From positions 1-64,000 of the forward strand of contig NW_018480008.1 of assembly GCF_002113885.1 (NCBI RefSeq): 64,000 nt of DNA. The letters are read 5' to 3'. Below are positions 33,261 through 54,601 of this stretch, piece by piece. The stretch is from Mizuhopecten yessoensis (lineage: Eukaryota). Every line of letters starts with the position of its first letter. Position 1 is the stretch's first letter. The notes under the pieces were generated by a model. That model was not told the DNA's origin. It worked only from the letters and a program-made list of their open reading frames with translations, and made no database searches. The translations under genes were made by a program, and so were the position numbers.

Positions 33261-34054
33261 AATACCAAACGTATCATAATAGTGGGATCCGCATGACGAA
33301 ACAAGAAAAGATTTTACGTCAGTTCTAATTGTTTGGATATAACAGAAGCCTGGAAACGTTGCTTTCCCCGACTTGCTGTATTTACTATATGTTTCGTACC
33401 TTTACCCTGTAGTACAGCTCGGAACTTAACGGCCATATAGTGCAGTAAATATTTATTTGTAGCTTTCTGTATGACTTCCCTAAATAATTAAACAGACACT
33501 TTCTTACATCATATCTCTAACAATTATTTTAGTGAGGGCGCACAGCGTAATGTGCGTAACAATGCCGTTTAAAATCCAAGATCATGAAATTTAGAGAGAA
33601 AATGTTTTTATTATATACTTCCTTGCTAGGTATGTCTGACGATTATTATGAGTCACGGGGGCGTTGAAAGTCAGCAAGTGGACAATCAGCCCACGAAGGT
33701 GACCTTAACCTTGTAGTTTGTATAGAGCTGGGCATGGTTTACATGTAATATTAACCTTTCCTGTGTTTGTTGTTGATAGTTTTAATTTCCTTGTTTCTTA
33801 ATCACCACGATTATCAGAGTCCAAAATAGACAAAATGGCTATCTTATACAGCGACAAGTGTTTCCTTGTTTTGGCTTTATATATCAACTTACACTAGATC
33901 TTTAAAAGTGAGCTTCCGTATCTCGTATCTCTCGTGGAAGCATTTTGTGAAAGCGCACAAATGTTTGTACAAGATTATGACTTTTCTAGTCAAAAAACAG
34001 TATAATTGAAAATGAATGATGAAACCCTTATATTTACATATTTCATTTTGAAAC

Positions 34055-35100
34055 CAACTGATCTGATGTCACCATCATGTCGACCGTTCTGACGTTACTA
34101 TCATTTCGACCAATCTGATGTCACTATCATGTCGACCAATCTGATGTCACTATCATGTTGACGGTTCTGATGTTTTATCATGTCGACCGTTCTGATGTCT
34201 CTATCATGTCGACCGGTCCGATGTCACTATCATGTCGACCGTTCTGATGTTATTATCATGTCGACCGTTCTGATGTCACTATCATGTCGACCAATCTGAT
34301 GTCACTATCATGTTGACCGTTCTGATGTTTTATCATGTCGACCGTTCTGATGTCACTATCATGTCGACCGTTCTGATGTTATTATCATGTCGACCGTTCT
34401 GATATGTCACTATCATGTCGACCAATCTGATGTCACTATCATGTCGACCGTGCTGATGTTACTATCATTTCGACCAATCTGATGTCACTATCATGTCGAC
34501 TGTTCTGATGTCATTATCATGTCGACCGTTCTGATGTCACTATCATGTCGACCAATCTGATGTCACTATCATGTCAACAGTTCTGATGTCACTATCATGT
34601 CGACCAATCTGATGTCACTATCATGTCAACAGTTCTGATGTCACTATCATGTCGACCAATCTGATGTCACTATCATGTCGACCGTTCTGATGTCACTATA
34701 ATGTCGACCAATCTGAGGTCATTATCATGTCGACCGTTCTGATGTCACTATCATGTCGACCAATCTGATGTCACTATCATGTCGACCGTTCTGATGTCAC
34801 TATCATGTCGACCAATCTGATGTCACTATCATGTCGACCGTTCTGATGTCACTATCATGTCGACCAATCTGATGTCACTATCATGTCGACCGTTCTGATG
34901 TCACTATCATGTCGACCAATCTGATGTCACTATCATGTCGACCGTTCTGATGTCACTATCATGTCGACCAATCTGATGTCACTATCATGTCGACCGTTCT
35001 GATGTCACTATCATGTCGACCAATCTGATGTCACTATATGTCTACTGTCCGTAGTCACTATTATGTAGACTGTTCCACTGTCACTATCCTGTCGACGTTT
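34055..35100. repeat. 26-bp satellite (52-bp dimer) between the tetraspanin paralogs
   Basis: ctgatgtcactatcatgtcgaccgtt alternates with ctgatgtcactatcatgtcgaccaat, ~40 units. Confidence 0.97.
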
Positions 35101-36235
35101 CTAAAAGAAAAATGATTTGTTGACGTTGTACACATGTTTTTAGTTTACGTGAACATAAAACAAGGCTTTTTCATTAACAGATTTGATTTCCGACCGAGAA
35201 AGTAAAATATTTAATGAATGAAGGCGTTAAGTTTGTTTACAAATATAGTGGATTGAAAGACGATCCTTTATAAAGTCAGTACATTGCATTTCATGAGCAT
35301 ATACAGCGTCCGATTCATTGACACATGTGACTGATAGGAACACGAATGTAGCTAGAACTACTTACAACACGTGAGACATTGTGTGCGTATGGTATCACTG
35401 CAATAGAAATAATTAGATCAATCAAAAATAGAATAAAGAGAAATTATTTAGTGTCCACGTGATTTATTGATGTCAAATATGTTTATATTAAATAAACTTT
35501 TACTGCAAATGATATTACTATGCACAGATTTGATGATGACAACATGGGCATCTATAATGTGTAGGCAAGTCAGTTTAGACAATCTACAACAGTGTACGTT
35601 AACATTTGATAAATGTATAATTCCCAAGTACATTGTTTGTGTTATATAATAACATCATGGCCGAACTTATATTTGATTATTAAATGTATGTATGTAAGAC
35701 TTTTAATCAATATGAAAAGATAAATTATTGACGAGGACAGCTTATATAAGTATGGACTTATATCTATGGTAAATTATTTAATTTAATGAATCAATTTGGT
35801 ATATTATACTCTGAGGTGCAATGGGTTAAGTAGAGGATTCATAAACTGCCTCATTTTGACATCACTACATGCTATTTTCGAAACATTTGTTTATAACTAT
35901 GGTGCATTGTTTACCCCCGCATATCACAGAATCCGGTCACCAAGGTGACCTTAATTTCAAGTCTTACCATGACGGCATAACTAAAAGGTGTAATAATACA
36001 AAAAATAAAACTTATCGGGGATCACCATCAGAAGGCCAACACTGGAGCCCATCCTTTTATCTGTGATATACCACTAGTACTATAAGGGTATTGCACTATT
36101 CACATATTTCTAGTTAATATATATACCTACACATATTTTTTTTAAACTGTAGCAATACATGGAGTATATATGTATTAAATCTGTATCAAGTATGTATCCA
36201 TCCATAATATTTTGCACATGTAAACATACAATGGA

Positions 36236-36425
36236 CATGACTAATTCGGATCACTAAGGGATACCGCCGTTAAATATATATCGAACTATTTAATCCATCA
36301 GTCCTTCTCTGTATTATCCTCCCAATTAGCGGGTCAGGACCTCTGGTACCCGCCCGTGATATTTGATTTACCTATTAAAGTACTAAGTTTAAATCATTGT
36401 TCTCATAACCACACAAACGTGCAAT
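36236..36425 (+). promoter_or_regulatory. Conserved upstream block of tetraspanin B (putative promoter)
   Basis: Paralogous to 25104-25290 and at the same ~350-bp distance from the ATG. TAATCC at 36291-36296. Confidence 0.7.
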
Positions 36426-36588
36426 GCCCACGTATGGCAGAAACATGTATCTACTTTTATCTTAAACGCCACAACGTTATTCAACTATTGTAGATTTTAC
36501 ATTTAATCAGAACCAAAGATGTGAAACCAAAGAGGGCAAATACACTGTTGTGATCTGTGACCGCCTGGAATTTATTGTACGCGAAAAA

Positions 36589-39500
36589 ATGGCTAAATGT
36601 TCATCTAGACAATTTCTCTTTCTGCTGTTTAATTTCCTATTTCTGGTAAGTACACAGCTTTGCATAAACCTGTCATGTAAAAACTAAATCTTTACCCTCA
36701 TTTTTATAAAGTTTCGAAGGAACGATCCTCGCATTGTGATATAAACATACACCGATGTCTTTAATTGAATCCTTTTAACAAGTTCTTTACCACATTACAT
36801 GGTAGAGAACAATGTTATATTTCAAATAGAATGTTGCAATGTAAACTCATACGTCTTAATAAATTGTTTAAATATTATTTAATAATTCCCCCTGTGTACT
36901 AACTGGAGATAACCAAAAGTTGTTTTCACTAATAGTAATATACTAACACTGTAGCATTTTTTTTATTTGAATGATTATTTTAAGAGATAAACATCTCGAT
37001 AATATACCTTAGTCAATTAATTATGTTAAATTTACAGGGTTGTTGTTGTTCAATATTCTAGATGTCAACAGCTATCTTTGTGGTCGAGGATAAGTTGAAA
37101 TGCTAATCCTAATCACGTCTAAATCTGTCCTTACTGTTACAGTGCCTTGGTCTGGGACTGGTAGGATTCGTGGCCTGGACCTTAGCGACCATTCCTACAG
37201 CCAACGAATTCATATCTGGTACACATGTAAGTAAATACAAGCTATAATCATATGTATGTATGTGTGTAGTAAGATATACAGATATGCGTAATTTGTTAAA
37301 TATGTATATTTATTGTACTGGAAACATTTTGAACTTCTGTTACGCATGATACTATTAATTGTTATAACTTCGCAGGTTAAAAAATGTGTGGTTCCAAGAA
37401 AACAACATATCAGCTCGCAATAAATTATCCGGGACTCCTTACAATGCAACCAGATTCATATCAAATTAATAATAACATTGTCTTTCACTAGGAATTTATT
37501 TCATGATAATTCGTTGTACTGGTAATATCAGATATGCATTTTGTCAAACTATAGGACTGTAGGGTGTGGGTAAGAATTATAGGGCCGGTAGAGGTGTCTC
37601 CTAATAGTCTTGAAGAACCCCTGATGCCTTTGTCTGTGTAGACATAATTTATTAGCCAATAGTTATATTCGATTAAACCTGATTGAGCATCTTCCATCTG
37701 GTTACGCACTGATGCAGCTTGTAGAGAACTTGATTAGGTAGCAATACCGATACATGTTTAAACCCCTTTCACATACGTCGCACAACACAACAGGTAAACG
37801 ACAGAAAACTGTGGGAACACATCATGCCGTAGTAGACCATTTTCAGAGAGTTCTGAACACGCTCAAAACGTTTTCGAGTTATATAATTTAATTCTCGACT
37901 CCGTGCTCATTTCGTAGGTCCGTTTTGCAGTGTCCTATAGCTGTGTCACGATAGACCTAGGTATTTAGTACGATTTTTGGGTCATATTAGACCCTCAGAA
38001 TCGTATGAATTTCGAACAATAGTTCTACTATTGTCTCACTTTAAACCAACAACAATTCTACGAATATACTATCTTTGTTCTCCCTTTCTGCTACTGGCCT
38101 AGGATATGAGCAAGCAATAGTCGTGTAAAATCGTACGATTGTTGTAAGAAAACCTATCATCGCAGGGTGTTGTACAAAGGATTTTATACGCTCGCGAGTT
38201 AGAGCGACTAATGTTAAAATGCCGTCCATCTGTCCGTTAACACTTTCTGATATCAAGTTAGTAATTTTATTAAAAAACATTTTAACATTCAAGTTTTATT
38301 TATGTTCTAATGCCCTTTTGATTATTTTATATTAAATTGAAAATAATTAAATTAGTGAACTGACAATGGGGTAAATGAATATCATACGAAAACAAAATTC
38401 GATCTGTTTAGACCAGGGCCCAGGTGTTCAAACGGTGATTAGCTTAATAACTGTTTGACGACATATTTCAGTCTCTAATAATTTTGACAATATGCAAGGT
38501 AAAATCTCAATTTTTGCATGCTTTTTTATTGTGCTAACATATTTGCAATAAAGAAAGTTTTAACCAAGTTATAGCTGTAGTTAAAGATACAATGTAAGAA
38601 AGAAAAAAAAAAATTCCAAAATTTGAGCTAATCACTGACAAAGATAATCACCTTTTGAACAATGTGACCCAGGTTGTTAGATACTGACTCTGATTTGGAG
38701 GCATAGAAAGTATGGGAAATTTTATCAATATTAAAATAATTTATTGTGAGTGGCTCCAAACAATAACTTTTACAACATTCAAGATAAAAAAATAAATAAG
38801 GAAGCAAATACAGTTTGGACTGAGACTTTTGATGTTTGGGATGCTATACTGTTTATGCACTTCGTTTTAAGATATACTAACAGAACCCTGTAATTAACAG
38901 CGAACAAAGGGACAGATGCCGTCGTTATAGAATACGAATTTAAAAATTAAACTGAGTCTATTAAATTGTCATACAAACATGACAATAAGGGAAAAATCGT
39001 ACAAATTCACTGTTCATACTTGCGTCGTGTAAACATAATCAAGTTAATGTGCTAAATAATGTTGCATTCTCTATAGCAGGTTATCTCCCCTATATCATCA
39101 GTGTGTAAGATGGAAACCGGGGACATGGAGTTAACTATTTTATTTTGTGTTGTAGGTAGTCACTTTGACCAGCTTTTGTCTCGGGTTTGTGATCATTATC
39201 ATAGGTAAGTGTTTACTTAGGATACTGTTTGACGCGTGAATTTGTTCCTTCAATACTTCCACATTCATATATGCAATAGAACACACATATACTCATGTAA
39301 CGTACACTAATGTCATATGTTTCGGAGTAAAAAATAAGATAGACCAGACGAGGGACCGCCTACTTCGCAAAAAGAAAGAATGAATTTTCATTGTTTTGTT
39401 GCTATGGATACGTTTTGCATGTTTACTGACGAACTCCTTAATTGATTTTGAGGTATTTTTCATGATAGCAATTTGTATATTACTTTGTCCTGATAACAGG

Positions 39501-42500
39501 AGGTATCGGCTGTGCTGCAGGGTTTTGCAAGGGATTATGTATACTGAAAACGGTGAGTATAATCGACTATATCCTAGTGTTATAGAACACAATATGCTTC
39601 GAAATAAATATAGTCCATTTCCTTAAATAATTATTTTCTTGGTGATATCATTTATTTCCTTGGTGATATCATTTATTTCCATGGTGATATCATTTATCTA
39701 AAGTTATCAATGTGTTATGTTTAAGTACAATTATCCTGATATTACTAATACCAACAAAATGCGTAAATACCATGGACATGCATGGTTTATATACTTATAT
39801 ATTAATATGTAATATAAACATATACATTGCAGTATCGTCTTGCACAGGTATGCTGCCTAGCAAATTAAGCCCAAAGACCAACTTTATCCAAAAAATGTTT
39901 CGCTGAACGAGAGTCGTTGACAAAAAAGAATGAAAATGATTCGGATCGTTAAGTTCTTTGAAATTTTCCAATGAGTTTTTTCTTTACTTCACTTGATCAC
40001 TTTTTGCAAAGTAGCGTTAATGTATAGCTATGATTCCCATGTGTTTATGGTGTGTTATAAACACAACCTTTGTGTTTTTCATGTTACAGTATGCTTTATA
40101 TCTCACAATTTGTCTTTGTAGTATGTCGGATTTATGTTGACCTTGTTATTCCTGGAGCTTGGACTTATATTTTTCATATATGCAGAGAAGTCACAGGTAA
40201 TTTTATCAACAGTTTAGTATGTTAGATGATGATATCATTTTTATCCTACATCCTCATTGGTTAAATGATAATCACGTTTAGGTCGGTGATTTGTGATAAT
40301 GACTCGGTGTTGCTATTTTTTAGAAACACCAGGTCAAATTTTCCTATATATTCACCTCAACAACAGTACAGAATTGATCAAAAACGTTCAGTGTTAAGAA
40401 CTACCAGTAAACTTGAATGACTTGTAGTACTCACCTGTGCATTAAGGTAGGTAAATCTCACACAGAAGGTTAATGTCACACGGTAGGTAAATCTCACACA
40501 GAAAGTTAACATCACACGGTAGGTTAACGTCACACGGTAAGTAAGCGTAACACGGTAGGTTAACGCCATGCAGTAGGTTAACGTCACACGGTAGATACAC
40601 GTCACACTTTTTGTTCTCTCTGTTTTCCAGATACCAAGCGTCATGCTCGACTCCTGGGACGGACTGAATACAGACACACAGTATAAGATTCAAAGCGAGG
40701 TAAATGTTCACTTCACGTTCCGATATAGTGTGCTATTGGGACGCCAAGACAATTATTGTTTTCAAATTTCTTCCCAACGATGATTTTCACGGGCTGCTGC
40801 CAGCCTAATAATGACCGCACTTTTGATATAGATGTCTGCTAACATAAGTTTGATATTTCATCACCTATTTGATATAGTTATAAAACGAAAGCCATCGTAT
40901 CTTAGAATCTTTTTGACTAAAAAGACATTTGTTATAACTTGTACGGCTATGTTGTTACAGTTGGAGTGTTGCGGTATACAGAACTATACGGAGTACGGAA
41001 CGGACGTGGAATCCTACCCCTCTAGCTGCTTTGTTGTGTATGGCGTCACTGGAATCATCGAGAAAACAGTCGATAACCTCTTCACAGTGAGCAAAGCTTA
41101 TATTACACCAATTAAACTATTTTTATCTGGTTATCACTTGTGTTGGCATGAATAACCTTTTATAACCCGAAGGATAAAATAGATATTGGTTTTTTAAACA
41201 ACATTTAACATCAATGATATGAATACAACCATAATGCATGCATGATTTAAGTTGTAATAATCTATTATTTTTTCTTTCTCAACGTATTTCATTAACTTAA
41301 TGTCAACCGGCCAGAGTATGTCGTATTCTATAAAACCGGTTTTGTTATTTCAAGGTGGACTGTCTGACTCAGATGCAGACCTGGTTGAATGATCACGTCC
41401 CCATATGGGTCTCTGTCATCGTGGCCGTTGCTGTAATAGAGGTAGGTGTCTGGACTCTACAGCGGTGTTGGCAAAGAGCGATTGATGAGTTTATCAAAAT
41501 TATATAATAAATATCTATAATGTAGGCGCACAGTAGAAATCATGGTGTCCGTCTCATCGGCCGTCCGTCCACAATGTGTTAGCTTATCTTATCTCATAAT
41601 CCAGCAGCCTTACATTTTTACATTGTTTACATATTGATAAAATATTGCATATGTAGATGTGCAGTAGGGGGCTAAAAGTGCCTAAGGTCGAAATCACAGT
41701 CACTGTTGCTAAATGGGTATCCTTGGCTATTGTGGGTGATAAATACGGCCATACACACAGCAGAGCCCTTGGTTCCATATAAATGATAAATTTCCTGATT
41801 GTTTATCATGTATGGGGGTCATCACTGTATGCATAAAATAATTAAAATAACAGTGATATACTGTAATAGACATGTATTCAATCTGTAAGACTAGTGTGAT
41901 ATCTAATTGCTGAACATGATTTGATAAAGTTGATAACAAAATTGTGCCATACTGTGTGTCATATTCAATTGCCAATAGATCAATATAAGAAATGACGGTC
42001 AAAAGTTACACTACCTATTATATGATAGTTAATGCTGCATGAAATGGAGCGTGAGCGATATTTTACTAGTTCTAAGTGATATACATGTGTCGTCTGTAGT
42101 ATTTTGTTTTTAATAGTATCATAATTTAACACCACGTGTTAGTAAAATCAATCATATCAGTTTGTCATGTAATATAACGATACTAATTAATAATTTCTCT
42201 TCATTAATATACAGTGCTTAAGCGGCCTCGCCTCCTGTATATTCTTACAACGGGTTCAAAAAAAGTTGAAAGTCGAACCTGTCAACGACGATGATGGAAC
42301 AAATGCGGACATAGAAATGGCAGTTATGGAGGCAGGTTCATCGGACGACAGGGTGTCTGATGAGGAAAATCAAGAAAATGACAATAGAATAAACTCTACT
42401 GGTTTGATACTTGTGACTCCTGCCTCGGAACAGGATATAAAGGATAATACGACTATCGATTATCTCAGTGAGAAAAACGTCGATTCATTATCAACGAATT

Positions 42501-45500
42501 CTCAAAGCGAAGTCAAAGATGAAACAGAAGACGTGATCCATTCTCAAGCAACAATTGATGATCCGTCATTGATACTAGTAGCCTCTGTTTCAAATAAAGA
42601 ACCAGCTATACACGAAACCAATGATTCTATTGCTGACAATGAAGTGGAGATCGTCGCTCTGACACAAACGGCTCCTGGAGATGGGCAGGACAATCGAGCT
42701 GACGAAAATAACGACGATTTAAGTTCAAATCAAAATACACCCGAACCGTCTGTGATAGTAGTTGCCTCTATAACCAAAGGTGAAACATCTGTAACAAGAA
42801 AAACAACAGATTCGTCTGATCAGGACAAAGTGGATTCATCAGTCCATGGAGAAAGGGATGAAGATGGTGATTTAAAGGTCGATAACAAAGATAGTGACAA
42901 TATTTCCCAACATAGCGAGCCTGATCGGAGCTTGATCGTGGTCGTCTCTGTAACCAAGGGAGAAACATCAACGGACAAGGAAGCGAACAAAATTGTTGAT
43001 AATGATCAGAGGGATATCGAAACCCTGACTCGGACGCCTCCTTTGGATGATACGAAAGATGCAAAAGATGAAAAAGTTGAAGATAAAAGTACATGCGATC
43101 AGACAATCGTAATAATTGCTTCTGAAAGAGATGACGAGAATTCAGTAAGATCAGAAAATAAAGCGATCGACGAATCTATAGACGAGAAAAGTAACGAAGA
43201 TAAAAACGACACCATGTCTATTCATAGTTTACCTGATCCGACTCTGTTACTGGTTGCCTCGGTTTCAAGGAAAGAAACTACCGTGACAGACACCAAAGAC
43301 GATGCTAATGGCATTGAAGTGGACACAGTCGCAATGGTGCAAATGACACCGAAAGACACGAACAAAGTGGACAGGCAAGACAACATTTCAAATCCCGAAC
43401 CATCCGACCAAAATGTGTTATTAGTCGCATCATTGACAAAGAGAGAAACGGCACAGAAAAACGGTTTTGAAGATACAGTGGGTACAATGTCCGAAGAACA
43501 ACCTGAACTCAAAGTCAAAGAAATAATAAAGGAGAGCAATGACGATCTAAGTTCAAATCCAATAGAACCTGATGCATCATTTATTACGGTAACCTCTCTG
43601 TCACACGCAGAGAATTCTGACGTAAAAGAAGTCACTGATTCTGCAGACAAGGTTGAAGTCGGTTCCGTAGCTCAGACACAAATGAATACAGTCGCCGTTA
43701 ATGACGATGGCAACACTGACATCACCCAAGATATCAATTCCGAACATATTGTCCCCGAGAAATCTTTGGTATTGTTTACTTCTGAACAAGAGATAGAAAT
43801 ATCTGGCAAAAAGGAAACAACTGATTCTTTGAAGGATTATGCAGTAGATACAGCAGTCTTGGAAGAAATGAATGGTAACAGGGAAAAAGAAAACAATGAT
43901 GAAAAAGATGACGTCACAATTTCTATTCATAGCACTTCTGAACCTTCTCTATTATTTGTTGCATCATTGTCAAAGGACTCTTCAGAAATAGTAGACGACA
44001 AGGAAATGGAAACAACTGCTTCGACACATATGGTTTCCGAGGATGTGACGAGCAATATAAAAGACGAAAACGACGACAATTTAAGTTCAAATGAAAGAAC
44101 ATCCGACCTGTCTGTGATAGCAGTTGCCACTGTGACGAATGGAGAAACATGTGGTATAAAGAAAGTGACCGATTCGTCTGTACTAGACCAAGTGGGATCA
44201 GTCCCGGAGGAAATAGAGGAACATGGTGATTTGAAGGACGATCATAAAGATGGTGACAGTATTTCCCGACAAAGCGAGCCTGATCTGAGCTTGGTCATGG
44301 CCGTCCCTGTAACAAAGGGTGACACGGTTGAGGAGGGGAAGATCATTGTTGACAATTATCAGGGGGATATCGCAACCCCGACTTGGACAACTCCTGGGGA
44401 CGAAACAAAAGATGAGAAAAATGATGACACCATTTCCAATAAAAGTACATCCGATCAGGATATGGAATCGATTGTTCCAATTTCAACTACTACAAAAACG
44501 AATTATTCTGAAGAGAATGACGTGAATACAATAACGTCGGCAAGTAAGGCTATCGACGCATCGATGGAGGAGATAAATGATGAAAATAAAGACGACACTA
44601 TCTCTATTCATAGTTTACCTGATCCGACTGTTTTACTGGTTGCCTCAGTTTCAAAAACAGCCGTGGTGGATACTAAGGATACCATTGATAACATTGAGAT
44701 GAACAATATACAAATGGCATCAAGTGATATGAAAGAAATTAACACAGAAGAAAAACAAGCCGACGTTTCCAGTCCCGAACCACCCGACCCGTCTTTGATA
44801 TTGGTCCCATCTGTGACGAAGGAGGAAACGTTACCAGAAAATGAAACTGTTACGGTGTCTGAAGAACAAACGGGGCTCCAAGAAATGACAAAGGAGAGCA
44901 AAGATGAAAGAGACGAAGAAACAAATTCAAATCAAATAAAACCTGATGTGCCATTGCTTATGGCCGCCTCTGTGTCACACGCAGAGAAATCAAATGTGAA
45001 GGAAGCCACGGATTCTGTTGACAATTATGAAGTCGATTCCGTAGCTCAGATACAGATGAATGCAGTCGACATTAGTGAAGATGACAACACTGACATGATC
45101 AAAGACATAAATTCTGATCATATTGTCACTGATCCATCTTTGAAAATGCTCATTTCTGAGAAAGAAGGGGAGATGTCTACGGAAAAGGAAATTTCAGATT
45201 CTTTTAAAGAAGAAGTAGTAGACACAGTTGCCCTGAAACAAATTGAGCATAACACGACAACGGAGAACAATGGTGAAAAAGATGATGACGCCACCATTTC
45301 CATTCAAAGCACATCTGAACCGTCTTTATTTCTGGTTGCATCATTGTCCAATGAAGAATCATTTTCTTATCCAGCCAACAGAGATGCAAAAGACGACAAT
45401 GAAGGAGAGATAGTCGCTCTAAAACGTATATATCCCAATAATGTAATGGATAATGAGAACGACGTAACAGGCGACGATACAAGTTCAAATCACAGTACAT

Positions 45501-48500
45501 CCGACCCCTCTGTGGAAGCAGAAACGTGTGAAATAACGAAAGCAACCGATTCGTCTAAACACGAAAAAGTTGAATCATTTATCCCGGAGGAAATTGAGGA
45601 AAATGGTGATTTAAAGGACGATAACAAAGAAGGTGACAATATTTCCCACCAGAGCACGCCAGACCAGAGCTTGGTTATGGTCGTCTCTGTAACGAAGGAA
45701 TCATCAACGGACAAGGAAGTGAATACAATTGTTGATAATGATCAGGGCGACATCGAAACACCGACATCAACGACCCCTGATGACGTTAAAAAAGATGAAA
45801 AAGATGATGATACCGTATCAAATCAAAGTACATGCTGTGAGGAAATGGTATTGATTACCCCGACTTCCACAAAACAGACACCTTCTGAAAATAAAATAAT
45901 GGATTATACGTCACAGGATGACGTCAATACAGTTACATCAGAAGACAAAGACATGGCAGTGTTGGTAGAGGAAAGAAATTGTGAAAATAAAGAAGACACC
46001 ATTTCTATTCATAGTCTACCCGATCCGACGCTGTTACTGGTTACAACAGAATCAAGGACAGAAACGTCCGTGATGGAAAATAAGGACGCTGTTGATGACA
46101 TTGAAGACGACACAGTAGCATTGGAACAAATGACACCATTAGATGTGAAAGACATTAGCAAAGAGAATAGTCTAGACAATATTTCCAGCCATAATCCATT
46201 CGACCCGTCTTTGATGTTCGTTGCAACTGTGACGCAGGAAGAAACGCTCCCAGAAAAAGAAATATTTTTTAAAGATGCACCAGTAAGAGAGGATGTAGAG
46301 GGAATGGATATCAAAGAAATGATAAAGTATAACAAAGATGAACATGAAAATGACACGAGTTCCACTCCATTAGAACCTGATGTGTCATCGATTAGGGTCG
46401 CCGCTGTATCATACGCTGAAAGGACAGATGTAAACGAACTCACAGATGCTGTTGACAAGTTTGAAGTTAGTTCTGAAGCTCAGACACAGATGAAAACAGC
46501 TGATGTTAAAGACGACAAAAAACCCGACATCACCGAAGACATTCGTTCCGAACACATGATGCCCAATCCACATTTGATAATGCCTAAATCTGAGCAAGAG
46601 GGAGAAAAATCTGGCGAAATGGAAACTACTGATCTTTTGAAAGATGAAGAAGTAGATAGAGCAGCCTTGGAAGAAATGGAACATAACCAGGCGATGGAGA
46701 ACAATGATAAAAAAGATTATGACGTCACCATTTCTGTTCAGAGCACTTTTGAACCGTCTTCATTACTTGGTGCAACATTTTCAAATGCAGAAACGTTTAT
46801 TGAAGAAGGCATTACAGATGTAGTGGGCGACGATGAAGGGGAAACAGGAGCTCTGAATCAAACGGTGCCTGTTGATGGGAAAGACGAAAACAAAAATAAA
46901 ATCATTGGAGAACCTATTTCCTTGACACCTGAAATGCCTTTAATAGTTGCTGCGTCTTTATCAAATGAAGAAACATCTCCTATAAAGGAAACTTCTGATC
47001 GGGGAGCGCAAGACAATGGAGCGATACTCAAAGTGTCGAGAGAAGAGAGTAAAGATAAAAAGGATATCGGCAGCATTTCGCTTCATGTATCACATGACAA
47101 GTCAGATTCGTTAGTACCATACAAAGTGGATACGGCATCATTCGAACAAATGGTCCCACCTGATGTAACTTCTGCGATGGTGGGAATAACAAATTCGAAG
47201 GAAAAAGATGCAAATGTAGCTGTTGAACGAACGGCGATTAATGATGTTCCAACGAATGACTCAAACTCTATGAATATCACATTCGATCCTTCATTGACAC
47301 TGAGCGCCACGGCGAACACTGCCGAGTTATCCGCGCAAGCCAACATGGACGCATTTGCATTAGATCAACCTGATGATGTGAAAGAAGACACAACGAATCA
47401 AACTGAAGACAACACCGTTTCAAAACAAGGTACATCTGATTCCTGTTTGCAACTAGTTGCTTCGATGTCATCATTAGACGAAACATCAGACCAAAATGGT
47501 ATGAACACTATAACTTTGGATCAAACGGCGATCGATGTACCAACTGACATTTCCATTCATAGTCCACCTGATAAGGCTTCGACATTGGAAGCTAGAGTGT
47601 CATTTTCGAAAAAAAATGCAATTAAGGAATCTGAGGATTTTTCAGGGATAGAAGACATGAGCACAGAATCCTCCGACGTGGCAGATGGTGCAAAATTCAA
47701 AATAGCTGATGCCACCACTTCCAATGATAACACACTTACTCCATCCTTGACAGTGGTTCACCCAGTACCAACTGAAGATGCATACAATGTAGAGGAAAAA
47801 TCAGAAAATGGCGACGTAGTCGACATGGACATATTACCGATGGATCAAATAGAAGCCTGTGGTACGGATGAAACAGTTGATGGCCTCTTTTCTATTCAAA
47901 GCACCCATGATTCACCATCAACTGATGCGGACGGCACAAATTCCGATCATGTTGGACATGCTAGATATTTGTCTGTGGTGGAAGATGTCGGCATAGAAGC
48001 ATTAGAACAAGACAAACATAAGAATGTGAAGGACAATTACAAAGATGAGTTTGAAGACGATTCCACTCCTAATCATGGTGCACGTGATCCCTCTTTGGAA
48101 CCAGTTGCTATGGTGTCAGCTAATGAAATGCATGCCACAAATGAAGATGTAGATGCGTCACAAACAGAGATCACTGAAACCATACCGAATACATCAGAAG
48201 AAGAAGACATAGACGCAATGCCTAAAGACCAAACGGAGGACTGTGATGAGTCAGACAGCAGGAAGGAACAAATAGACGAGGACACCAATTCGAACCTTGA
48301 TATTCACGTTATGCCTATGGAAATTATTCCTTTGGTATTAACAAATGTGTCACAAAAAGTTGTCACTGATGCAATACCGTTGGAACACACGGAGCCTAGT
48401 AATCTGAAGTTTAATAACATTATAGAAACAACAAACGACTCAATTTCCAAACAAATAACACTCGATTTAACTTCAGACCTTGTTGCACCGTTACCAATGC

Positions 48501-51500
48501 CGGAATTGACTTCAATCAAGGAATCCGATAACTCGGAAACAGAAAACACGGATGCATTACCGATGCATGAAAAGGAGCCTTGTTATTTAGAAAACGATAG
48601 CAAGGATGTAAAAGACGACGACAACATCATCAATCAAACTTTGAAACAAACTGAGTTGTTGTCAAATGGTGAAAAATCTATCGTAACGGAAAATAAAAAC
48701 ACAACAGTAAATGAAGTTTCGGACACAATAAAATTGGAACAAACGAAGTCTGACGATGTTACAAGAGATAGCAAGGAAGAAATTACCGACGACACTGAAG
48801 ACACACTTGGTTCGTCTTTGGAACTTGGTGCCTTGGTATCAACGAATGAAACATATGCAGTAAATGCTGACGAGTCAAAAATAGAGGTCATAGACGCAGT
48901 TCCGATAAATCAAACTATACATGGTGATATGGATAATGAGACTACAACCAATCCCACTTCGGAAATGATTGCGTCTGTATTAATCCAAGAAAAGTCGTTC
49001 ATAGAAGAAACAGAATCATCAGAAAAAGGCATTATTGGTGCATGTCAGATGGATCAAACGGAGGCTTGTGAAGTGGAAAACAATAACAAGAATGAAGCAG
49101 AGGATACCAACTCCACCATTCAAAGTACACAGGATTCATCTTTGAAACAAGCTCCTTTGGTTTCACCTGATGAAAAATTTACCGTTGCGGAATGTACAAA
49201 CTCAACAGCGAACGAAAATCCAGACACACCAGAATTTGAAAAAACAGATACTGACGTTGTAATGGACGTTAGCGAGGAAAGAGTATCCAAGGATACTCTT
49301 TCCAATCATGGTATGAATGACCCGTCTTTGGAGCTTGATGCTATGGTATCAACAGAAGCGTCAAAACAATTCAGCGGAGCAACGCCGACTGAACAAACGG
49401 CGCCTGGTGGTTTGAAGAACAATGACTATATTGAAACGACAAACGACCCAATTTTCAATCAAATAACACTCGATTCCACTTTAAACCTGGTTGTACCAGT
49501 ATCAATGCCAGAAATAACTTCAATCAAGGAAACCGATAACTCGGATACAGAAGGTACGAAGACATTACCGATGGATGAAAAAGAGCCTTGTAATTTAAAC
49601 AACGATATCAAGGATGAAACAGACTACGACACATTCACCATTCAAACTTTAAAACATTCTGATTTGATATCAACTGGTGAAAATACTACAGAAAAAAAAG
49701 TTCTGGACACAACAATACTAGAACAAATGAAGGCTGACGATGTTACAAGCAAGAAAGAAGAAATGGCCAACGACACTCCTTCCAATGAAGATACACGTGA
49801 TCCGACTTTGGAACTTGGTGAAATTGTATTAGCTAATGAAAATTCCGTACTAAATGAAGTTACTGGTGTGTCAAGAATGGAGCTCGTAGACGCAGTTACG
49901 ATCGAACAAACTTTACCTGGTGACCCGAAGTTCGAGATGGATAATGAAATAACACCCATTCCCACCTCAGGACTAATTGCGACTGTATCAATCCCAGCAA
50001 TAACTTCAATCGAAGTAACAGATTCATCAGAAAAAGATGTAATTGTTGCATGTCAGATGGATGAAACGGAGGCTTGTGTTGTGGAAAACGATAACGGGAA
50101 TGAACAAGAGGACACATTCACCTCTCAGAATTTGTCTTTGAAACAAGCTGTTCAGGTATCAACTGACGAAAAAACTACCATTTTCTCCTCAGAACTAGTT
50201 GCGCCGGTATTGACGCCACACATGGTTTCAATCAAGGAAACTGATTCATCAGAAAAGGAAGGCATGGAGACATTACCAATGGATCAAACGGATGACACCT
50301 TCACCACTCAAACGCTGAAACTTACTGATGAAAAGTATATCATTACAAAAGATACAGCCACAACGGAATTGGAACAAAGGGAGGCAAGCGATGTGACAAA
50401 CGATAACAAGGAAGAAAGTACTGACGGCACTCTTTGTAAAGAAGGTAAGCCTTATCCGTCTATAAAGCCTGTTGCCTTGGTATCAACAAATGACATGATT
50501 TCAATTGATGAAGTTGCTGATACGTCAGTAGGAGAGATCGTTGACACAATACCGATTCTAGATGATTTGGTATCAACTCAGGACACGTTTGCAGTTGTTG
50601 AACAATCAGATACTACAGGCGACGAAGTTCCGGACACAACAGCATTGGAGAAAGGTGAAGGTGGCAATGTAACAGACAGTAAGGAGGTTATTGCCGACAG
50701 CAGTATTTCTGATCATGGTACACATGATCCGTGTTTGGGAATGTCTGCTTTGTTATCCACAGATAAGTCAGAAAAAGAAGTCGCTGGCGCAATACTGACT
50801 GAGCACACGGCGTCTGTTGATCTGCAGCACAACACCGATAACAAAACAACAAACGACACAGTTCCTGACCAAATACCACTCGATCTGAATTCAGAACTGG
50901 TTCTGACGGTGCCAAGTTCAGAAAGTTCAGAAATGCCTACAATAAAGGAAACCGAGTCAATGGAAACATTGCCGACGGATGAAATGGTGTCTTGTCATTT
51001 CGAAAACAATAACAAGGATGTAACATCTGACGACATCTTAACCACTCAAAGTATACAGGATCCTTCTTTCAAACGAACAAATGAAACATCTGTCATGGAA
51101 GAAAATGAAAACATCACAAAAATTGAAATATCGGACACACAAGCATTGGGACAAACAGAGACTCGCCATGTGACGACGGATAATGAAGAAATAGCCGAGG
51201 CCACTATTTCCAATGAAAGATTGCATGATCCGTCTTTGGAAATTGTTGCTTTGGTATCAACTGATCAAACGTATGCAACAGATGCAATTGCTGATAAGTC
51301 AGAAAAAGAGGTCGTTGAACAAACGGTACCTGCTCTTCTGACGCTCGATATCGGTAATGAAACTGCACCCGATCCCGATTCGAAATTGATTGCATCTGTA
51401 TCAATTCAAGTAATGTCTACAGTCGAAGAACCCGATTTATCAGCAAAAGAAAGTATTGGTGAATTACAAATTGATCAAACCGTGGCTTGTGGGGTGGAAA

Positions 51501-54500
51501 ACGATGACAAAGGTAAAAATGAGGATATCACCTTCACTCAAATTACTCGGGATTCATCTTTGAAACAAGCTGCTCTGGTATCAACTGATGAAAAATTTAC
51601 CATTGCCGAACAGACAGACGTCACAGAAAACGAAGATCCAGATACAACAGAACCGGAACAAATGGAGGCTGACATTGTGACAGGCGAAAACAAAAAGGAA
51701 ATGACAGAGGACACTATTTCCAGTCATGGTTTGCATGATCCGTCTTTGGAACTTGATGTTTTGGTATCCACAAAAGAAATCGATGAAATAGCTGATGCGT
51801 CAAAAGAAGAGGCCTTCAGCGCAATACCGATTGAACAAACAGTAACGAGTGATCTTACGATCGACATTCAAACGCAGGACTCGTCTTCGAAACTAGCTGC
51901 TTCGGTATCAGCAAATACATCTAAACTAGTGGAACAATCAGACATCACTAACAACGATCATCTGGTTAAAACAGCATTGGAGAAGAAAACGGATAATGAA
52001 GATGCGACAGACGGTAACAAAGAAGAAATAGCCAGATACTCTTTTGCCAATGAAGACTTTGACCAAACGGTACCTGATGATCTGACGCTCGATATCGGTA
52101 ATGAAACTGCACCCGATTCTCATTCAGAACTGATTGCATCTGTATCAACCCAAGACATCTCTTCAGTCGGAGAAACAGATTCGTCAGAAAAAGAAAGTTT
52201 TGATGCATTACAGATTGATCAAATGGAGGTTTGCGAGGTGGAAAGCAAAAGAGCTAGCGATACTATCACCATTCAAAATACAAAGGATTCATCTTCGAAA
52301 CAAGCAGCCTTGGTATCAACAAATAAAACGTCTTCAATTGTGGAAAATTCAGATACCTCGTACAATGAAGATCTGGAAACAGCAGCACTGGGAAAAACAG
52401 ATGCAACAGATGATAACAAGGAAGAAATAGCCAAGATTACTATGTCTGATCATAATAGGCATGATCCGTCATTGGAATCTAATGTTATGGCATCAAATGA
52501 CGAAACTTCCTCAATCAATGAAGATCCTGATACGGCAAAGAAAGTGGAGGCTGATACATTACCAATTTATAAAACGGCACCAAGTGATTTGGAATCATCT
52601 CTCGAAATGTCTACAATCAAGGAATCAAATACTTCAGAAAAGGAAGCTAAGGACACTTTACCTATGGACCAAGTAGATTCTTGTTATGTGAGAAACGACA
52701 AGAAGGAAGAAACAGCTAACGATTGCATCAACATTCAAAATACTGCAGATTCATCCTTGAAAGCAGATGCTTTGGAATCAGCTGATGAAATATACACAGA
52801 TATCACAAATGAAGCTTCGAATACAGCAGCGTTGGAACAAAATGAAGCTGGTGATCTGACAGACGGTGGCACAGAAAAACTAGCTGACGAAACTGTTCAA
52901 AATGATGGTAAACCTGAGCCCTCTGGTGAACCTAATGCTGTTGTATCAAACAATGAAAGACTTGCAATTAATGTAGATATTGATGCGTCAGAAAACGGAC
53001 ACGTAGACATAACAACGTCAGCAGAGCACGACATGAACGTATTTCCTATGGATCAAATGGAGGCTGGTGCTACGAAACATGTTAGCAAAGATGACTTAGC
53101 TGAGGAAACCATTTCTGCACATGATACACATAATTCTTCTCCGAAGCCAGCTGATTTGGAATCAAATGATGGAGAGTCTACGAATGAGGGCACTATTGAT
53201 TCGTCAGAAAAAGAAGACGTGGACAGCGAAGTATTAGACGATAAGGAGGACAGTGATGTAATGAACTACAGCAAAGAGGAAGCTGCTGAGGATGTTTCAC
53301 TTTCACTAACAACCGATCAAACGCCAGAAGAGGGCACGAATTCTGAAGCAATGGAAATGAATAATGCTGGCCCAATATTACCTCTAGTGCAAGACACTGA
53401 TGAGAAGCTAAAACCAAAAGGAGATGAGATCATTAGTGAATTATTGAATACAATGGAACAACCTATTAAATCTCCAACAAACACTATGACATCTATGGAA
53501 GGAAAACATACCGAAGGAGTTATTGGTAAAGCTGAAACTCGCTCTGTAAAGGATGAATTCGCTCTCGAACAGCCTAACAACCAAGAGTCAGTAGATCTTT
53601 TGTACCGACAAGAGTGCTTAGAAGCAGGACGTAGTCCGTTACCCGAATCTTCATCAAGCCAAATCGAAGAAATGTCATTTAGAAACACAGATGAGAAAAA
53701 GAACGGTCGAAAAGAAGTCCAAGATAAACACGATAAGGGAACTGTTGATGAAGGCAAAAAAATTGAGTCTAAGGAAGAACAGTTCATGCATTTGGAAGGA
53801 GAAGAAAATAAATCAACGATCGATGAACCTGTTGACAAGAGCCACGACCAGATTCAGGACGAAGTGAAACAAATAGAAAAATGTGATGACACTTACAAAC
53901 CAGTTAAATTAGAAGACAAAAATGAATGTCAGGCTATCAGAGATTCAGATCAAACAAACGCAGAGGAAGACAGAACAACAAACAACGTATCAAAACCTAC
54001 TGACAAACAAATATCAAAACCATCAGTGGATCAAAATGAAGATGAAATACAGAAAGATAGCGAAAAAACTTCATTGGATATTCATCCGAAAAATATCACT
54101 AGCAATCAGATTGCAAGTGATTCAGAGGAGGCTAATGGTGCGGAGTTATTGGACGACCATATCAAAGACAAAACTCCTAAAAACGGAGATATTGATGGTA
54201 CAATTTCTTCTTCTTCACTTAAGATTGATTTGAACGAAGCAGGGTGTCAACGAAATGAGTCAGAAAAGGACAATAATTCAGACAATGAAGAATACAAAGA
54301 TGCGTTGGATTATGTACCGGAAGTAGAAGAGTTTACATTGGCACCAGAAGAAAAAAGAGTAAGTGACAAACCAAAGGTCAATCCAAAATCAAAGGGACAA
54401 CAGCGTATAGACATATCACACGGAAAAGGCAAATCAAGCTTCAAAAAGGGGGCTAAGAAAGAAGTGAAGGAAACAGCTACAAAAGGTTCTAAGAAATCAA

Positions 54501-54601
54501 CAACGGAGGCGGAAGGAAAAGGCCCAAAATCGATAGTCAAGGAAAAACAAAACAGTTTCAAACAGAAAGCGGCTTTCGTTAACCGGGTTGTTTGGCGATA
54601 A
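36589..54601 (+). CDS. Giant tetraspanin, paralog B (predicted 4,328 aa; tetraspanin core plus ~4,100-aa acidic repetitive tail)
   Basis: Nine GT-AG exons: 36589-36645, 37143-37226, 39156-39204, 39500-39552, 40122-40196, 40631-40699, 40961-41086, 41355-41441, 42215-54601. Exons 1-8 have the same sizes as in paralog A (57/84/49/53/75/69/126/87 nt). LECCG, PSSC and VDCL motifs are present. Exon 9 begins CLSGLASCIFLQRVQKKLKV, in frame with the 4,111-codon ORF. Confidence 0.9.
38413..38673. mobile_element. MITE with imperfect ~33-bp terminal inverted repeats, in intron 2 of paralog B
   Basis: Left end ccagggcccaggtgttcaaacggtgattagctt. Right end reverse-complemented: cctgggtcacattgttcaaaaggtgattatctt. 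The interior is non-coding and AT-rich. Confidence 0.7.
39632..39698. repeat. 21-bp tandem repeat x3
   Basis: atttccttggtgatatcattt repeated. Confidence 0.7.
40445..40607. repeat. 18-bp minisatellite just upstream of the exon 6 acceptor of paralog B
   Basis: ggtaggttaacgtcacac-type units, ~9 copies. Confidence 0.85.
41545..41830 (+). mobile_element. Possible non-autonomous element fragment with a (ccgt)n seed
   Basis: tgtccgtc..ggccgtccgtccaca followed by a HINE/pearl-like body. Ends not resolved. Confidence 0.35.
42215..54601 (+). CDS. 12,387-nt giant terminal exon of tetraspanin B
   Basis: Acceptor tttctcttcattaatatacag at 42214. No stop for 4,128 codons. D/E/T/S-rich with internal repeats. 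AATAAA at 55517-55522. Confidence 0.9.
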   Translation, partial: CLSGLASCIFLQRVQKKLKVEPVNDDDGTNADIEMAVMEAGSSDDRVSDEENQENDNRINSTGLILVTPASEQDIKDNTTIDYLSEKNVDSLSTNSQSEVKDETEDVIHSQATIDDPSLILVASVSNKEPAIHETNDSIADNEVEIVALTQTAPGDGQDNRADENNDDLSSNQNTPEPSVIVVASITKGETSVTRKTTDSSDQDKVDSSVHGERDEDGDLKVDNKDSDNISQHSEPDRSLIVVVSVTKGETSTDKEANKIVDNDQRDIETLTRTPPLDDTKDAKDEKVEDKSTCDQTIVIIASERDDENSVRSENKAIDESIDEKSNEDKNDTMSIHSLPDPTLLLVASVSRKETTVTDTKDDANGIEVDTVAMVQMTPKDTNKVDRQDNISNPEPSDQNVLLVASLTKRETAQKNGFEDTVGTMSEEQPELKVKEIIKESNDDLSSNPIEPDASFITVTSLSHAENSDVKEVTDSADKVEVGSVAQTQMNTVAVNDDGNTDITQDINSEHIVPEKSLVLFTSEQEIEISGKKETTDSLKDYAVDTAVLEEMNGNREKENNDEKDDVTISIHSTSEPSLLFVASLSKDSSEIVDDKEMETTASTHMVSEDVTSNIKDENDDNLSSNERTSDLSVIAVATVTNGETCGIKKVTDSSVLDQVGSVPEEIEEHGDLKDDHKDGDSISRQSEPDLSLVMAVPVTKGDTVEEGKIIVDNYQGDIATPTWTTPGDETKDEKNDDTISNKSTSDQDMESIVPISTTTKTNYSEENDVNTITSASKAIDASMEEINDENKDDTISIHSLPDPTVLLVASVSKTAVVDTKDTIDNIEMNNIQMASSDMKEINTEEKQADVSSPEPPDPSLILVPSVTKEETLPENETVTVSEEQTGLQEMTKESKDERDEETNSNQIKPDVPLLMAASVSHAEKSNVKEATDSVDNYEVDSVAQIQMNAVDISEDDNTDMIKDINSDHIVTDPSLKMLISEKEGEMSTEKEISDSFKEEVVDTVALKQIEHNTTTENNGEKDDDATISIQSTSEPSLFLVASLSNEESFSYPANRDAKDDNEGEIVALKRIYPNNVMDNENDVTGDDTSSNHSTSDPSVEAETCEITKATDSSKHEKVESFIPEEIEENGDLKDDNKEGDNISHQSTPDQSLVMVVSVTKESSTDKEVNTIVDNDQGDIETPTSTTPDDVKKDEKDDDTVSNQSTCCEEMVLITPTSTKQTPSENKIMDYTSQDDVNTVTSEDKDMAVLVEERNCENKEDTISIHSLPDPTLLLVTTESRTETSVMENKDAVDDIEDDTVALEQMTPLDVKDISKENSLDNISSHNPFDPSLMFVATVTQEETLPEKEIFFKDAPVREDVEGMDIKEMIKYNKDEHENDTSSTPLEPDVSSIRVAAVSYAERTDVNELTDAVDKFEVSSEAQTQMKTADVKDDKKPDITEDIRSEHMMPNPHLIMPKSEQEGEKSGEMETTDLLKDEEVDRAALEEMEHNQAMENNDKKDYDVTISVQSTFEPSSLLGATFSNAETFIEEGITDVVGDDEGETGALNQTVPVDGKDENKNKIIGEPISLTPEMPLIVAASLSNEETSPIKETSDRGAQDNGAILKVSREESKDKKDIGSISLHVSHDKSDSLVPYKVDTASFEQMVPPDVTSAMVGITNSKEKDANVAVERTAINDVPTNDSNSMNITFDPSLTLSATANTAELSAQANMDAFALDQPDDVKEDTTNQTEDNTVSKQGTSDSCLQLVASMSSLDETSDQNGMNTITLDQTAIDVPTDISIHSPPDKASTLEARVSFSKKNAIKESEDFSGIEDMSTESSDVADGAKFKIADATTSNDNTLTPSLTVVHPVPTEDAYNVEEKSENGDVVDMDILPMDQIEACGTDETVDGLFSIQSTHDSPSTDADGTNSDHVGHARYLSVVEDVGIEALEQDKHKNVKDNYKDEFEDDSTPNHGARDPSLEPVAMVSANEMHATNEDVDASQTEITETIPNTSEEEDIDAMPKDQTEDCDESDSRKEQIDEDTNSNLDIHVMPMEIIPLVLTNVSQKVVTDAIPLEHTEPSNLKFNNIIETTNDSISKQITLDLTSDLVAPLPMPELTSIKESDNSETENTDALPMHEKEPCYLENDSKDVKDDDNIINQTLKQTELLSNGEKSIVTENKNTTVNEVSDTIKLEQTKSDDVTRDSKEEITDDTEDTLGSSLELGALVSTNETYAVNADESKIEVIDAVPINQTIHGDMDNETTTNPTSEMIASVLIQEKSFIEETESSEKGIIGACQMDQTEACEVENNNKNEAEDTNSTIQSTQDSSLKQAPLVSPDEKFTVAECTNSTANENPDTPEFEKTDTDVVMDVSEERVSKDTLSNHGMNDPSLELDAMVSTEASKQFSGATPTEQTAPGGLKNNDYIETTNDPIFNQITLDSTLNLVVPVSMPEITSIKETDNSDTEGTKTLPMDEKEPCNLNNDIKDETDYDTFTIQTLKHSDLISTGENTTEKKVLDTTILEQMKADDVTSKKEEMANDTPSNEDTRDPTLELGEIVLANENSVLNEVTGVSRMELVDAVTIEQTLPGDPKFEMDNEITPIPTSGLIATVSIPAITSIEVTDSSEKDVIVACQMDETEACVVENDNGNEQEDTFTSQNLSLKQAVQVSTDEKTTIFSSELVAPVLTPHMVSIKETDSSEKEGMETLPMDQTDDTFTTQTLKLTDEKYIITKDTATTELEQREASDVTNDNKEESTDGTLCKEGKPYPSIKPVALVSTNDMISIDEVADTSVGEIVDTIPILDDLVSTQDTFAVVEQSDTTGDEVPDTTALEKGEGGNVTDSKEVIADSSISDHGTHDPCLGMSALLSTDKSEKEVAGAILTEHTASVDLQHNTDNKTTNDTVPDQIPLDLNSELVLTVPSSESSEMPTIKETESMETLPTDEMVSCHFENNNKDVTSDDILTTQSIQDPSFKRTNETSVMEENENITKIEISDTQALGQTETRHVTTDNEEIAEATISNERLHDPSLEIVALVSTDQTYATDAIADKSEKEVVEQTVPALLTLDIGNETAPDPDSKLIASVSIQVMSTVEEPDLSAKESIGELQIDQTVACGVENDDKGKNEDITFTQITRDSSLKQAALVSTDEKFTIAEQTDVTENEDPDTTEPEQMEADIVTGENKKEMTEDTISSHGLHDPSLELDVLVSTKEIDEIADASKEEAFSAIPIEQTVTSDLTIDIQTQDSSSKLAASVSANTSKLVEQSDITNNDHLVKTALEKKTDNEDATDGNKEEIARYSFANEDFDQTVPDDLTLDIGNETAPDSHSELIASVSTQDISSVGETDSSEKESFDALQIDQMEVCEVESKRASDTITIQNTKDSSSKQAALVSTNKTSSIVENSDTSYNEDLETAALGKTDATDDNKEEIAKITMSDHNRHDPSLESNVMASNDETSSINEDPDTAKKVEADTLPIYKTAPSDLESSLEMSTIKESNTSEKEAKDTLPMDQVDSCYVRNDKKEETANDCINIQNTADSSLKADALESADEIYTDITNEASNTAALEQNEAGDLTDGGTEKLADETVQNDGKPEPSGEPNAVVSNNERLAINVDIDASENGHVDITTSAEHDMNVFPMDQMEAGATKHVSKDDLAEETISAHDTHNSSPKPADLESNDGESTNEGTIDSSEKEDVDSEVLDDKEDSDVMNYSKEEAAEDVSLSLTTDQTPEEGTNSEAMEMNNAGPILPLVQDTDEKLKPKGDEIISELLNTMEQPIKSPTNTMTSMEGKHTEGVIGKAETRSVKDEFALEQPNNQESVDLLYRQECLEAGRSPLPESSSSQIEEMSFRNTDEKKNGRKEVQDKHDKGTVDEGKKIESKEEQFMHLEGEENKSTIDEPVDKSHDQIQDEVKQIEKCDDTYKPVKLEDKNECQAIRDSDQTNAEEDRTTNNVSKPTDKQISKPSVDQNEDEIQKDSEKTSLDIHPKNITSNQIASDSEEANGAELLDDHIKDKTPKNGDIDGTISSSSLKIDLNEAGCQRNESEKDNNSDNEEYKDALDYVPEVEEFTLAPEEKRVSDKPKVNPKSKGQQRIDISHGKGKSSFKKGAKKEVKETATKGSKKSTTEAEGKGPKSIVKEKQNSFKQKAAFVNRVVWR

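Follow-up and report, generated by a model that had tools for sequence, protein, structure and literature searches.

A 338.7-kb scaffold of the Yesso scallop, Mizuhopecten yessoensis, carries in its first 64 kb (64,000 nucleotides with 0 N; hereafter the window), on the + strand, the gene LOC110442163, whose nine exons (36589–54601) very probably encode a tetraspanin core and a giant repetitive tail as one gene. The protein obtained by joining the exons by script from the window sequence alone comprises 4,328 amino acids (aa), with a mass of 473.5 kDa and an isoelectric point of 4.1. Ordinary tetraspanins are proteins of about 200–350 aa with minimal cytoplasmic parts, their cytoplasmic C-terminal tails measuring about 5–70 aa. 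The best explanation overall, which we hold to be rather likely, is a 4,328-aa membrane protein with an unfolded tail acting as a tether or spacer. A 473-kDa tetraspanin with 95% of its mass cytoplasmic, unfolded and polyanionic would widen the known capability of the family.

An earlier sequence-only reading of this stretch had proposed such a fusion, put its mass above 400 kDa and knew of no described example. The mass agrees with the joined model, and no paper on the locus, the protein accessions or their NCBI names was found in the open-access literature. The fusion itself is already present among automatic RefSeq predictions, so it is not unseen. XP_021341307.1 (the same locus) and XP_060078180.1 show the same joining of a core to a giant exon; they differ in being automatic models, named either 'uncharacterized' or, misleadingly, 'extracellular matrix-binding protein ebh-like'. 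Other misleading automatic names include enolase-phosphatase E1-like and CAR1-like.

Exon structure and the split fourth helix

Exon 9 (42215–54601) encodes the second half of the fourth transmembrane segment (TM4), a basic stop-transfer segment and the 4,100-aa acidic tail with its stop codon. Its frame is open from 42215 for 12,387 nt, that is 4,128 codons, up to the stop at 54599–54601, in agreement with the roughly 4,100 further codons claimed earlier; the list of open reading frames (ORFs) of the window gives it as 42266–54601 (4,111 aa). An open frame of 4,128 codons cannot arise by chance in DNA of 40% G+C.

The remaining exons are small and have canonical AG/GT borders. Exon 1 (36589–36645) contains the ATG, a short basic N-terminus and the first part of TM1 (FNFLF, with a polar Asn); it ends at a GTAAGT donor and is the same as the start of XP_021341307.1. 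Exon 2 (37143–37226) completes TM1 and encodes the small extracellular loop, and its DNA is 97% identical to that of the neighbouring paralog A. TM2 is divided between exon 3 (39156–39204; 49 nt, first half, ending in phase 1) and exon 4 (39500–39552; 53 nt, starting in phase 1), the latter encoding the second half of TM2 and a GC..G intracellular turn. Islands of similarity in paralog A correspond to both (86% for exon 3, at 26922–26991, and 93% for exon 4). TM3, with a polar Glu, is encoded by exon 5 (40122–40196) and the first part of the large extracellular loop by exon 6 (40631–40699). Exon 7 (40961–41086) carries the CCG and PSSC motifs of this loop and is the best Pfam-matching part of XP_021341307.1. 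Exon 8 (41355–41441) contributes the loop's fourth Cys together with the first half of TM4 and ends in ..VIE before a GTAGGT donor, a boundary identical in paralog A. The join of exons 3 and 4 is in phase 1, the remaining joins are in phase 0. A single-exon Pfam search of the genome gave no match in the window, these exons being too short to score.

The division of TM4 between two exons is an argument for one coding unit. Exon 8 stops in the middle of the helix (..AVAVIE), and exon 9 opens with CLSGLASCIFL followed by QRVQKKLK. The AG acceptor before 42215 reads ..ATATACAG, with two in-frame stops immediately 5' of it. When the core was compared with the whole window by tblastn, the second half of TM4 was found only at the head of exon 9 and at the matching site of paralog A, and no alternative exon completing TM4 for the giant gene exists in the 64 kb. 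The RefSeq model XP_021341307.1 (4,294 aa, with a PF00335 match) likewise joins core exons to the giant exon, its residues 167–4294 being 100% identical to exon 9. The proposed phase-0 splice from exon 8 to the helix-finishing exon is thus supported by the donor, the acceptor, the split helix and the RefSeq models of both Mizuhopecten and Ylistrum balloti. That core and tail are made as one mRNA and one protein is predicted from comparison between species and paralogs.

It is highly improbable that the large ORF forms a gene apart, driven by a promoter of its own and standing behind the tetraspanin exons by coincidence. The ORF begins with half of a membrane helix after an acceptor, lacks an ATG in its first 35 codons and is preceded by stops; paralog A and all relatives retain this half-helix, in each case behind a tetraspanin core. 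Annotation as stand-alone genes of the later parts of the Argopecten irradians array (described below) could be cited in favor of a separate gene. The warning that annotation by ORF would detach the tail from its core applies to precisely those pieces.

XP_021341307.1 omits exons 3 and 4 (102 nt, 34 aa, in frame) and has three transmembrane segments only; inclusion of exon 4 in the nine-exon model brings the fourth one back. The 34 residues of TM2 are present in paralog A and in all orthologues (three other scallops), and we read their omission as a probable annotation gap rather than biology. A candidate exon at 40323–40364 and a candidate exon 3 start at 39469 were ruled out by conservation in paralog A and by the orthologues.

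Reading on through the exon 8 donor (41442–41507), 21 codons to a stop, would complete a plausible TM4 with a short basic tail. As a short isoform this extension was rejected: it is unconserved in paralog A and in other species and is probably due to chance.

Tetraspanin core, paralog A and scallop relatives

A complete tetraspanin had been claimed for the eight small exons, and all of its hallmarks were found. By Kyte-Doolittle hydropathy the nine-exon model has four hydrophobic segments, at about residues 7–39, 42–79, 75–104 and 184–212, and no scanned interval of the tail exceeds 1.29. Polar residues occupy TM1 (Asn in FNFLF), TM3 (Glu in FLELG) and TM4 (Glu in AVIEC) and are conserved in the alignment of relatives; the large loop carries ECCG, PSSC and VDC (exons 7 and 8), invariant across all relatives. 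Residues 1–260 of XP_021341307.1 match PF00335 with 57.1 bits (cut-off 32.1), at profile positions 79–224 only, because TM2 is missing from the RefSeq model. Orthologues and paralog A reach 91–99 bits over positions 3–224. The protein therefore shares with ordinary tetraspanins of this family the four transmembrane segments, CCG and PxSC, a four-Cys large loop, the polar residues of TM1, TM3 and TM4 and juxtamembrane Cys; it differs from them in the cytoplasmic tail of about 4,100 aa and in its divergent core, which gives weak direct matches to TSPAN7, CD9 and CD53 (the nearest solved chains).

By analogy with tetraspanin topology the disulfide-bearing, Cys-rich loop would lie outside and the basic segment after TM4 inside, and therefore the whole tail would be cytoplasmic. 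The opposite arrangement, with the tail as a mucin-like, adhesive or shell-matrix polyanion outside the cell on a membrane anchor, would be suggested by the NCBI name 'ebh-like' and by a general resemblance of acidic Ser/Thr-rich repeats to mollusc matrix proteins. We give it hardly any credence. In addition to the four segments, the loop and the basic segment, which place the C-terminus in the cytosol, the tail has 51 N-x-S/T sequons, about the number expected from its composition, and no Ebh, FIVAR or other Pfam domain, the name reflecting composition only; the motif at its tip is of a type that works in the cytosol.

Paralog A (25455–31433, + strand; XP_021341306.1, 485 aa) was delimited by tblastn, DNA alignment and RefSeq. 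It has the nine-exon plan and, as the sequence-only reading had stated, an identical junction within TM4. In the alignment of its DNA with the giant gene only the exons and a promoter-side block can be aligned, the introns having diverged; the conservation of exons alone therefore marks all nine, including the two tiny TM2 exons, as real. The block 5' of the start codon (36218–36661 against 25086–25527 in paralog A) is 72% identical, and window positions 36195–36488 align with the region upstream of the Ylistrum orthologue. The conserved non-coding stretch 36195–36588 (+ strand) is accordingly a candidate promoter or 5' untranslated region.

The tail of paralog A is 285 aa long and contains two repeat units, visible only with a profile. 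Beyond its stop (31431–32300) the same frame retains traces of repeat units, interrupted by stop codons and in one case reading ..ITVASVS.., and a 62-nt match joins the end of paralog A (31413–31474) with the giant exon (44042–44103). These traces point to a longer tail that paralog A probably once had and that has now decayed.

When 1,200 aa of the tail were compared exhaustively by HMMER with 1.84 billion representatives, five proteins only were returned, all from Pectinidae. They are XP_021341307.1 (the giant gene) and XP_021341306.1 (paralog A) of M. yessoensis, XP_060078180.1 of Ylistrum balloti (4,968 aa), XP_033738360.1 of Pecten maximus (741 aa) and XP_069128640.1 of Argopecten irradians (1,391 aa). 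In 5/5 of them the match begins at residue ~201, directly after the tetraspanin core. As far as this search reaches, giant-tailed tetraspanins appear to be restricted to scallops. The Ylistrum protein scores 99 bits for a full-length PF00335 match (length-matched search, core-only score), and its core is identical to that of the nine-exon model at 195 of 215 positions (91%), without gaps. The search for core and tail in other molluscs, suggested earlier, has thus yielded a second giant and B-type genes in Argopecten and Pecten.

An A-type gene followed by a B-type gene, the tandem order of paralog A and the giant gene, also occurs at the Ylistrum, Argopecten and Pecten loci. In Pecten maximus B-type exons lie at 20226–20318 and 25749–25889 of the locus, 4 kb 3' of the annotated A-type gene, and no gene has been called there; the remainder of this B-type gene falls outside the stretch analysed. 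In Argopecten the B-type gene continues without interruption into open segments of 939, 271, 1,434, 1,108 and >734 aa with like composition (locus 19263–33022; frames 2, 0, 2, 1 and 2). The acidic repeat of this array is a different one and very uniform. The array is annotated as several genes, with calls of 1,391, 1,428, 1,076 and 4,785 aa, the last of them running off the locus. In a tree of the first 400 residues the two A-types group together (100/99 support), apart from three B-type rows among which no order of branching was obtained; the duplication is therefore older than these genera.

The sole normal-sized relative found by a word-based search with the core is a 287-aa tetraspanin with a tail of ~75 aa and 50% identity in the core. 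It is known only from transcript-sized contigs, and its best matches in the M. yessoensis genome are genes A and B. Given this short-tailed relative, it looks as though an ordinary tetraspanin gained the long tail within the scallop lineage.

Composition, repeats and constraint of the tail

The tail (4,128 residues) contains 23% D+E, 20.5% S+T and 8.4% K+R, has two Trp and bears a net charge of about -600. There are 209 S/T-x-x-D/E sites and ~64 short hydrophobic motifs among acidic spacers. An iterated profile built from the tail detects ~32 copies of a unit of ~146 aa between 42425 and 53302 (+ strand). Each unit consists of two halves of ~70 aa, with D-P-S-L-x-L-V-A-S-V-S and then V-D-T-x-x-L-x-Q in an acidic Ser/Thr-rich context. 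Within the array three super-repeats of ~460 aa (42635–46786, + strand), found by protein comparison, are 45–52% identical, and a second zone of the tail has a period of ~168 aa at the protein level. The Ylistrum tail also has ~32 units, the A-type tails two.

The repeats are visible only as protein, no tandem repeats having been detected in the DNA by TRF. A 461-aa super-repeat compared with the M. yessoensis genome gave significant matches only within the giant ORF. A Pfam search of residues 200–4294 found no family at E <= 0.01, and an Atlas feature and cluster search with the tail found no usable match.

The prediction of a largely disordered polyanionic tail fits these properties. With a mean hydropathy of 0.41 the tail falls under the charge-hydropathy boundary (0.466), and an AlphaFold2 model of one 171-aa unit gave a pLDDT of 50, a pTM of 0.11 and no secondary structure, which fits disorder of the unit and cannot prove it with an alignment of only 30 rows. 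Taken together with the topology of the core, a tail that is both cytoplasmic and disordered is probable. From denatured-state polymer scaling the radius of gyration of such a chain is estimated at ~28 nm, with a contour length of ~1.5 um.

Comparison of the Mizuhopecten and Ylistrum tails gives a synonymous divergence (dS) of ~1.0–1.3 and a ratio of nonsynonymous to synonymous substitution (omega) of ~0.3–0.4 for the proximal tail, the first repeat zone and the tip; between internal super-repeats omega is 0.5–0.6. Both ends are conserved. The membrane-proximal segment (42215–42856, + strand) is collinear across species and paralogs, shows 53% aa identity to Ylistrum with omega 0.32 and matches the A-type tails. 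At the other end, the last 115 aa (54254–54598, + strand), an acidic block followed by a Lys-rich end, share 43% identity with the C-terminal 116 aa in Ylistrum, with omega 0.41. BLASTP aligned the two giants only at residues 1–1,693 of XP_021341307.1 (36%) and over the last ~115 aa (43%). When the tail was cut into 24 chunks (140 aa each), 23 of them were matched best by another part of the same protein and not by the orthologue. The gene offers a natural example of a protein whose ends are conserved while the repeats between them are freely replaced, and in which selection on chain length and charge is directly testable.

A frame still open at dS ~1, set against the stop-filled remnant of paralog A, is therefore one maintained by selection. 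Neutral runaway expansion of repeats, or a pseudogene in the making, would leave the tail functionless; such an origin could draw on the fast, lineage-specific turnover of the array, on frame breaks in Ylistrum and Argopecten and on the relaxed constraint (omega 0.3–0.6). At dS ~1 an unconstrained 12-kb frame would be filled with stops, whereas the actual frame is entirely open in Mizuhopecten and almost entirely in Ylistrum, and true decay is seen in the remnant of paralog A; we regard the neutral explanation as very unlikely. Two or more scallop genera have retained the architecture over a dS of ~1.

The tail tip, proposed function and rival explanations

The conserved tip contains an FFAT-like core, EYKDALD (54290–54310, + strand), with an acidic upstream flank. 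It is the sole match to the pattern E-[FY]-x-[DE]-[AC]-x-[DE] in each giant and lies at the orthologous place, flanked by NSDNE in one giant and NSDTE in the other. The consensus N-S-D-x-E-E-Y-K-D-A-L-[DE]-Y-x-P-E is near-invariant in the two giants and is followed by E-E-F-T-L-A-P-E and the Lys-rich end. A second, weaker FFAT-like block, EFTLAPE (54329–54349, + strand), is conserved in Ylistrum and is sub-optimal, with Leu instead of an acid at position 4. The terminal RVxW was ruled out as a conserved motif, being unconserved in Ylistrum.

The motif of protrudin, EFKDAIE, likewise has Lys at position 3; it nevertheless binds VAP, and its FFAT score is 1.0 (PMC9213790; PMC3261905). The scallop tip, EYKDAL[DE] with an acidic flank, is of the same variant type as protrudin and resembles in this respect the FFAT tethers protrudin, VPS13 and PTPIP51; it differs from them in that the motif, a putative VAP ligand, is carried by a tetraspanin and terminates a spacer of 4,100 aa. 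No FFAT-bearing or giant tetraspanin was found in the open-access literature.

In the proposed mechanism the tail would be an unfolded polyanionic chain in the cytosol with specific functions at its two ends. One end would be formed by the tetraspanin anchor and the proximal ~170 aa, the other by the distal tip with its FFAT-like motif and Lys-rich end. The repeat middle would be selected mainly for length, charge and short hydrophobic 'sticker' motifs, acting weakly and multivalently. Such a protein could serve as a long-reach tether or spacer between the membrane bearing the tetraspanin and a partner of the tip, most plausibly VAP on the endoplasmic reticulum. A tether or spacer whose tip binds VAP is put forward tentatively, at well under even chances. 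A still more speculative variant, to which we attach little weight, is a molecular ruler in which the repeat-expanded chain length would set a membrane-to-membrane distance of tens of nm, with the tip on VAP or another partner. If it is true, the distance would be far above that of ordinary contact sites and the chain length would be renewed in each scallop lineage. The ruler could then belong to a system of regularly spaced membranes peculiar to scallops and confined to a small tissue, which would also explain the missing reads in bulk RNA.

Several observations weigh against the overall explanation, the one-gene architecture included. Four M. yessoensis RNA-seq runs (four studies, each sampled at 18–24%) gave no read on any exon or junction across 36560–42559, two of the runs being formally no test. 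The RefSeq model lacks the TM2 exons, and therefore its N-terminal part was probably not built from transcripts. Splicing inside exon 9 or a tissue-restricted long isoform is possible. The giant region of Ylistrum has one frame break, at about 27572–27586 of its locus (segments 21561–27593 and 27517–36036 overlap), which the RefSeq model bridges; this break and those in Argopecten may be assembly errors or real. The shallow alignment behind the AlphaFold2 result has been mentioned above. Finally, the FFAT-like motif is seven residues long and is seen in two species only, and VAP, most plausibly the partner of the tip, is predicted from this motif.

The main structural rival is an isoform switch, in which the gene would mostly produce a tetraspanin of ordinary size and the full tail would be rare, tissue-restricted or shortened by splicing of exon 9, as in giant-exon ankyrin. 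The lack of reads in the four RNA runs is in line with it, as are the imperfect RefSeq N-terminus, which suggests low expression, and the tolerance of short tails in the family (from 285 aa in the A-type; ~75 aa in the related transcript). On the other hand, the window offers no other exon finishing TM4, the read-through of the exon 8 donor is unconserved, and 12.4 kb have been kept open with omega 0.3–0.6, and therefore the full tail would be translated often enough for selection. We consider the switch unlikely, with perhaps a one-in-several chance.

The main functional rival keeps the long tail and dispenses with the end-to-end tether. The protein could be a membrane-bound cation (Ca2+) buffer, or it could form a polyanionic brush or gel by sticker-and-spacer self-association. 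The net charge, the D+E content, the S/T-x-x-D/E sites and the short hydrophobic motifs within acidic spacers would suit such roles, and the lineage-specific expansion of repeats suggests selection on bulk properties. Both leave the conserved distal 115 aa and the FFAT-like block unexplained, and no Ca-binding domain was found in the Pfam search. This alternative seems doubtful and slightly less likely than the isoform switch.

The scallop protein may be compared with two further kinds of known membrane-associated proteins. Peripherin-2/RDS and ROM1 are tetraspanins with an unfolded functional cytoplasmic C-tail of ~60 aa, neither repetitive nor strongly acidic. The likeness lies in a tetraspanin core with a disordered, functional cytoplasmic C-terminus; no sequence relation was seen, and the scallop tail differs in being long, repetitive and acidic. 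In AHNAK and the giant-exon ankyrins, which are peripheral proteins, one huge exon encodes thousands of repetitive or extended residues working at membranes, the units of AHNAK measuring ~128 aa. No homology to these was detected by Pfam or by the exhaustive HMMER tail search, and the scallop protein differs in being integral through its tetraspanin core.

The results have consequences for annotation. TM2 is absent from the RefSeq giant, several gene calls divide the Argopecten gene among them, the copy in Pecten maximus is uncalled and the names in use are misleading.

The only RNA reads obtained were a few partial matches, from two runs, to a piece of ~35 nt in intron 2 (38414–38448); their flanks differ, and they have a fixed G>T at 38424. 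We take this piece for one copy of a repeat whose expressed copies lie elsewhere. Two small runs presumed to be RNA contain 6–8% of the sampled words.

No Pfam match was obtained for five further ORFs in the window. In Ylistrum the interval between the A-type and B-type genes (locus 2716–9183) contains several ORFs of 308–951 aa on the + strand, some of them overlapping, with no match to the profile of the tail unit. The 3' flank of the giant gene is syntenic: an HSP70-family gene downstream of the Ylistrum orthologue matches window positions 59879–60947.

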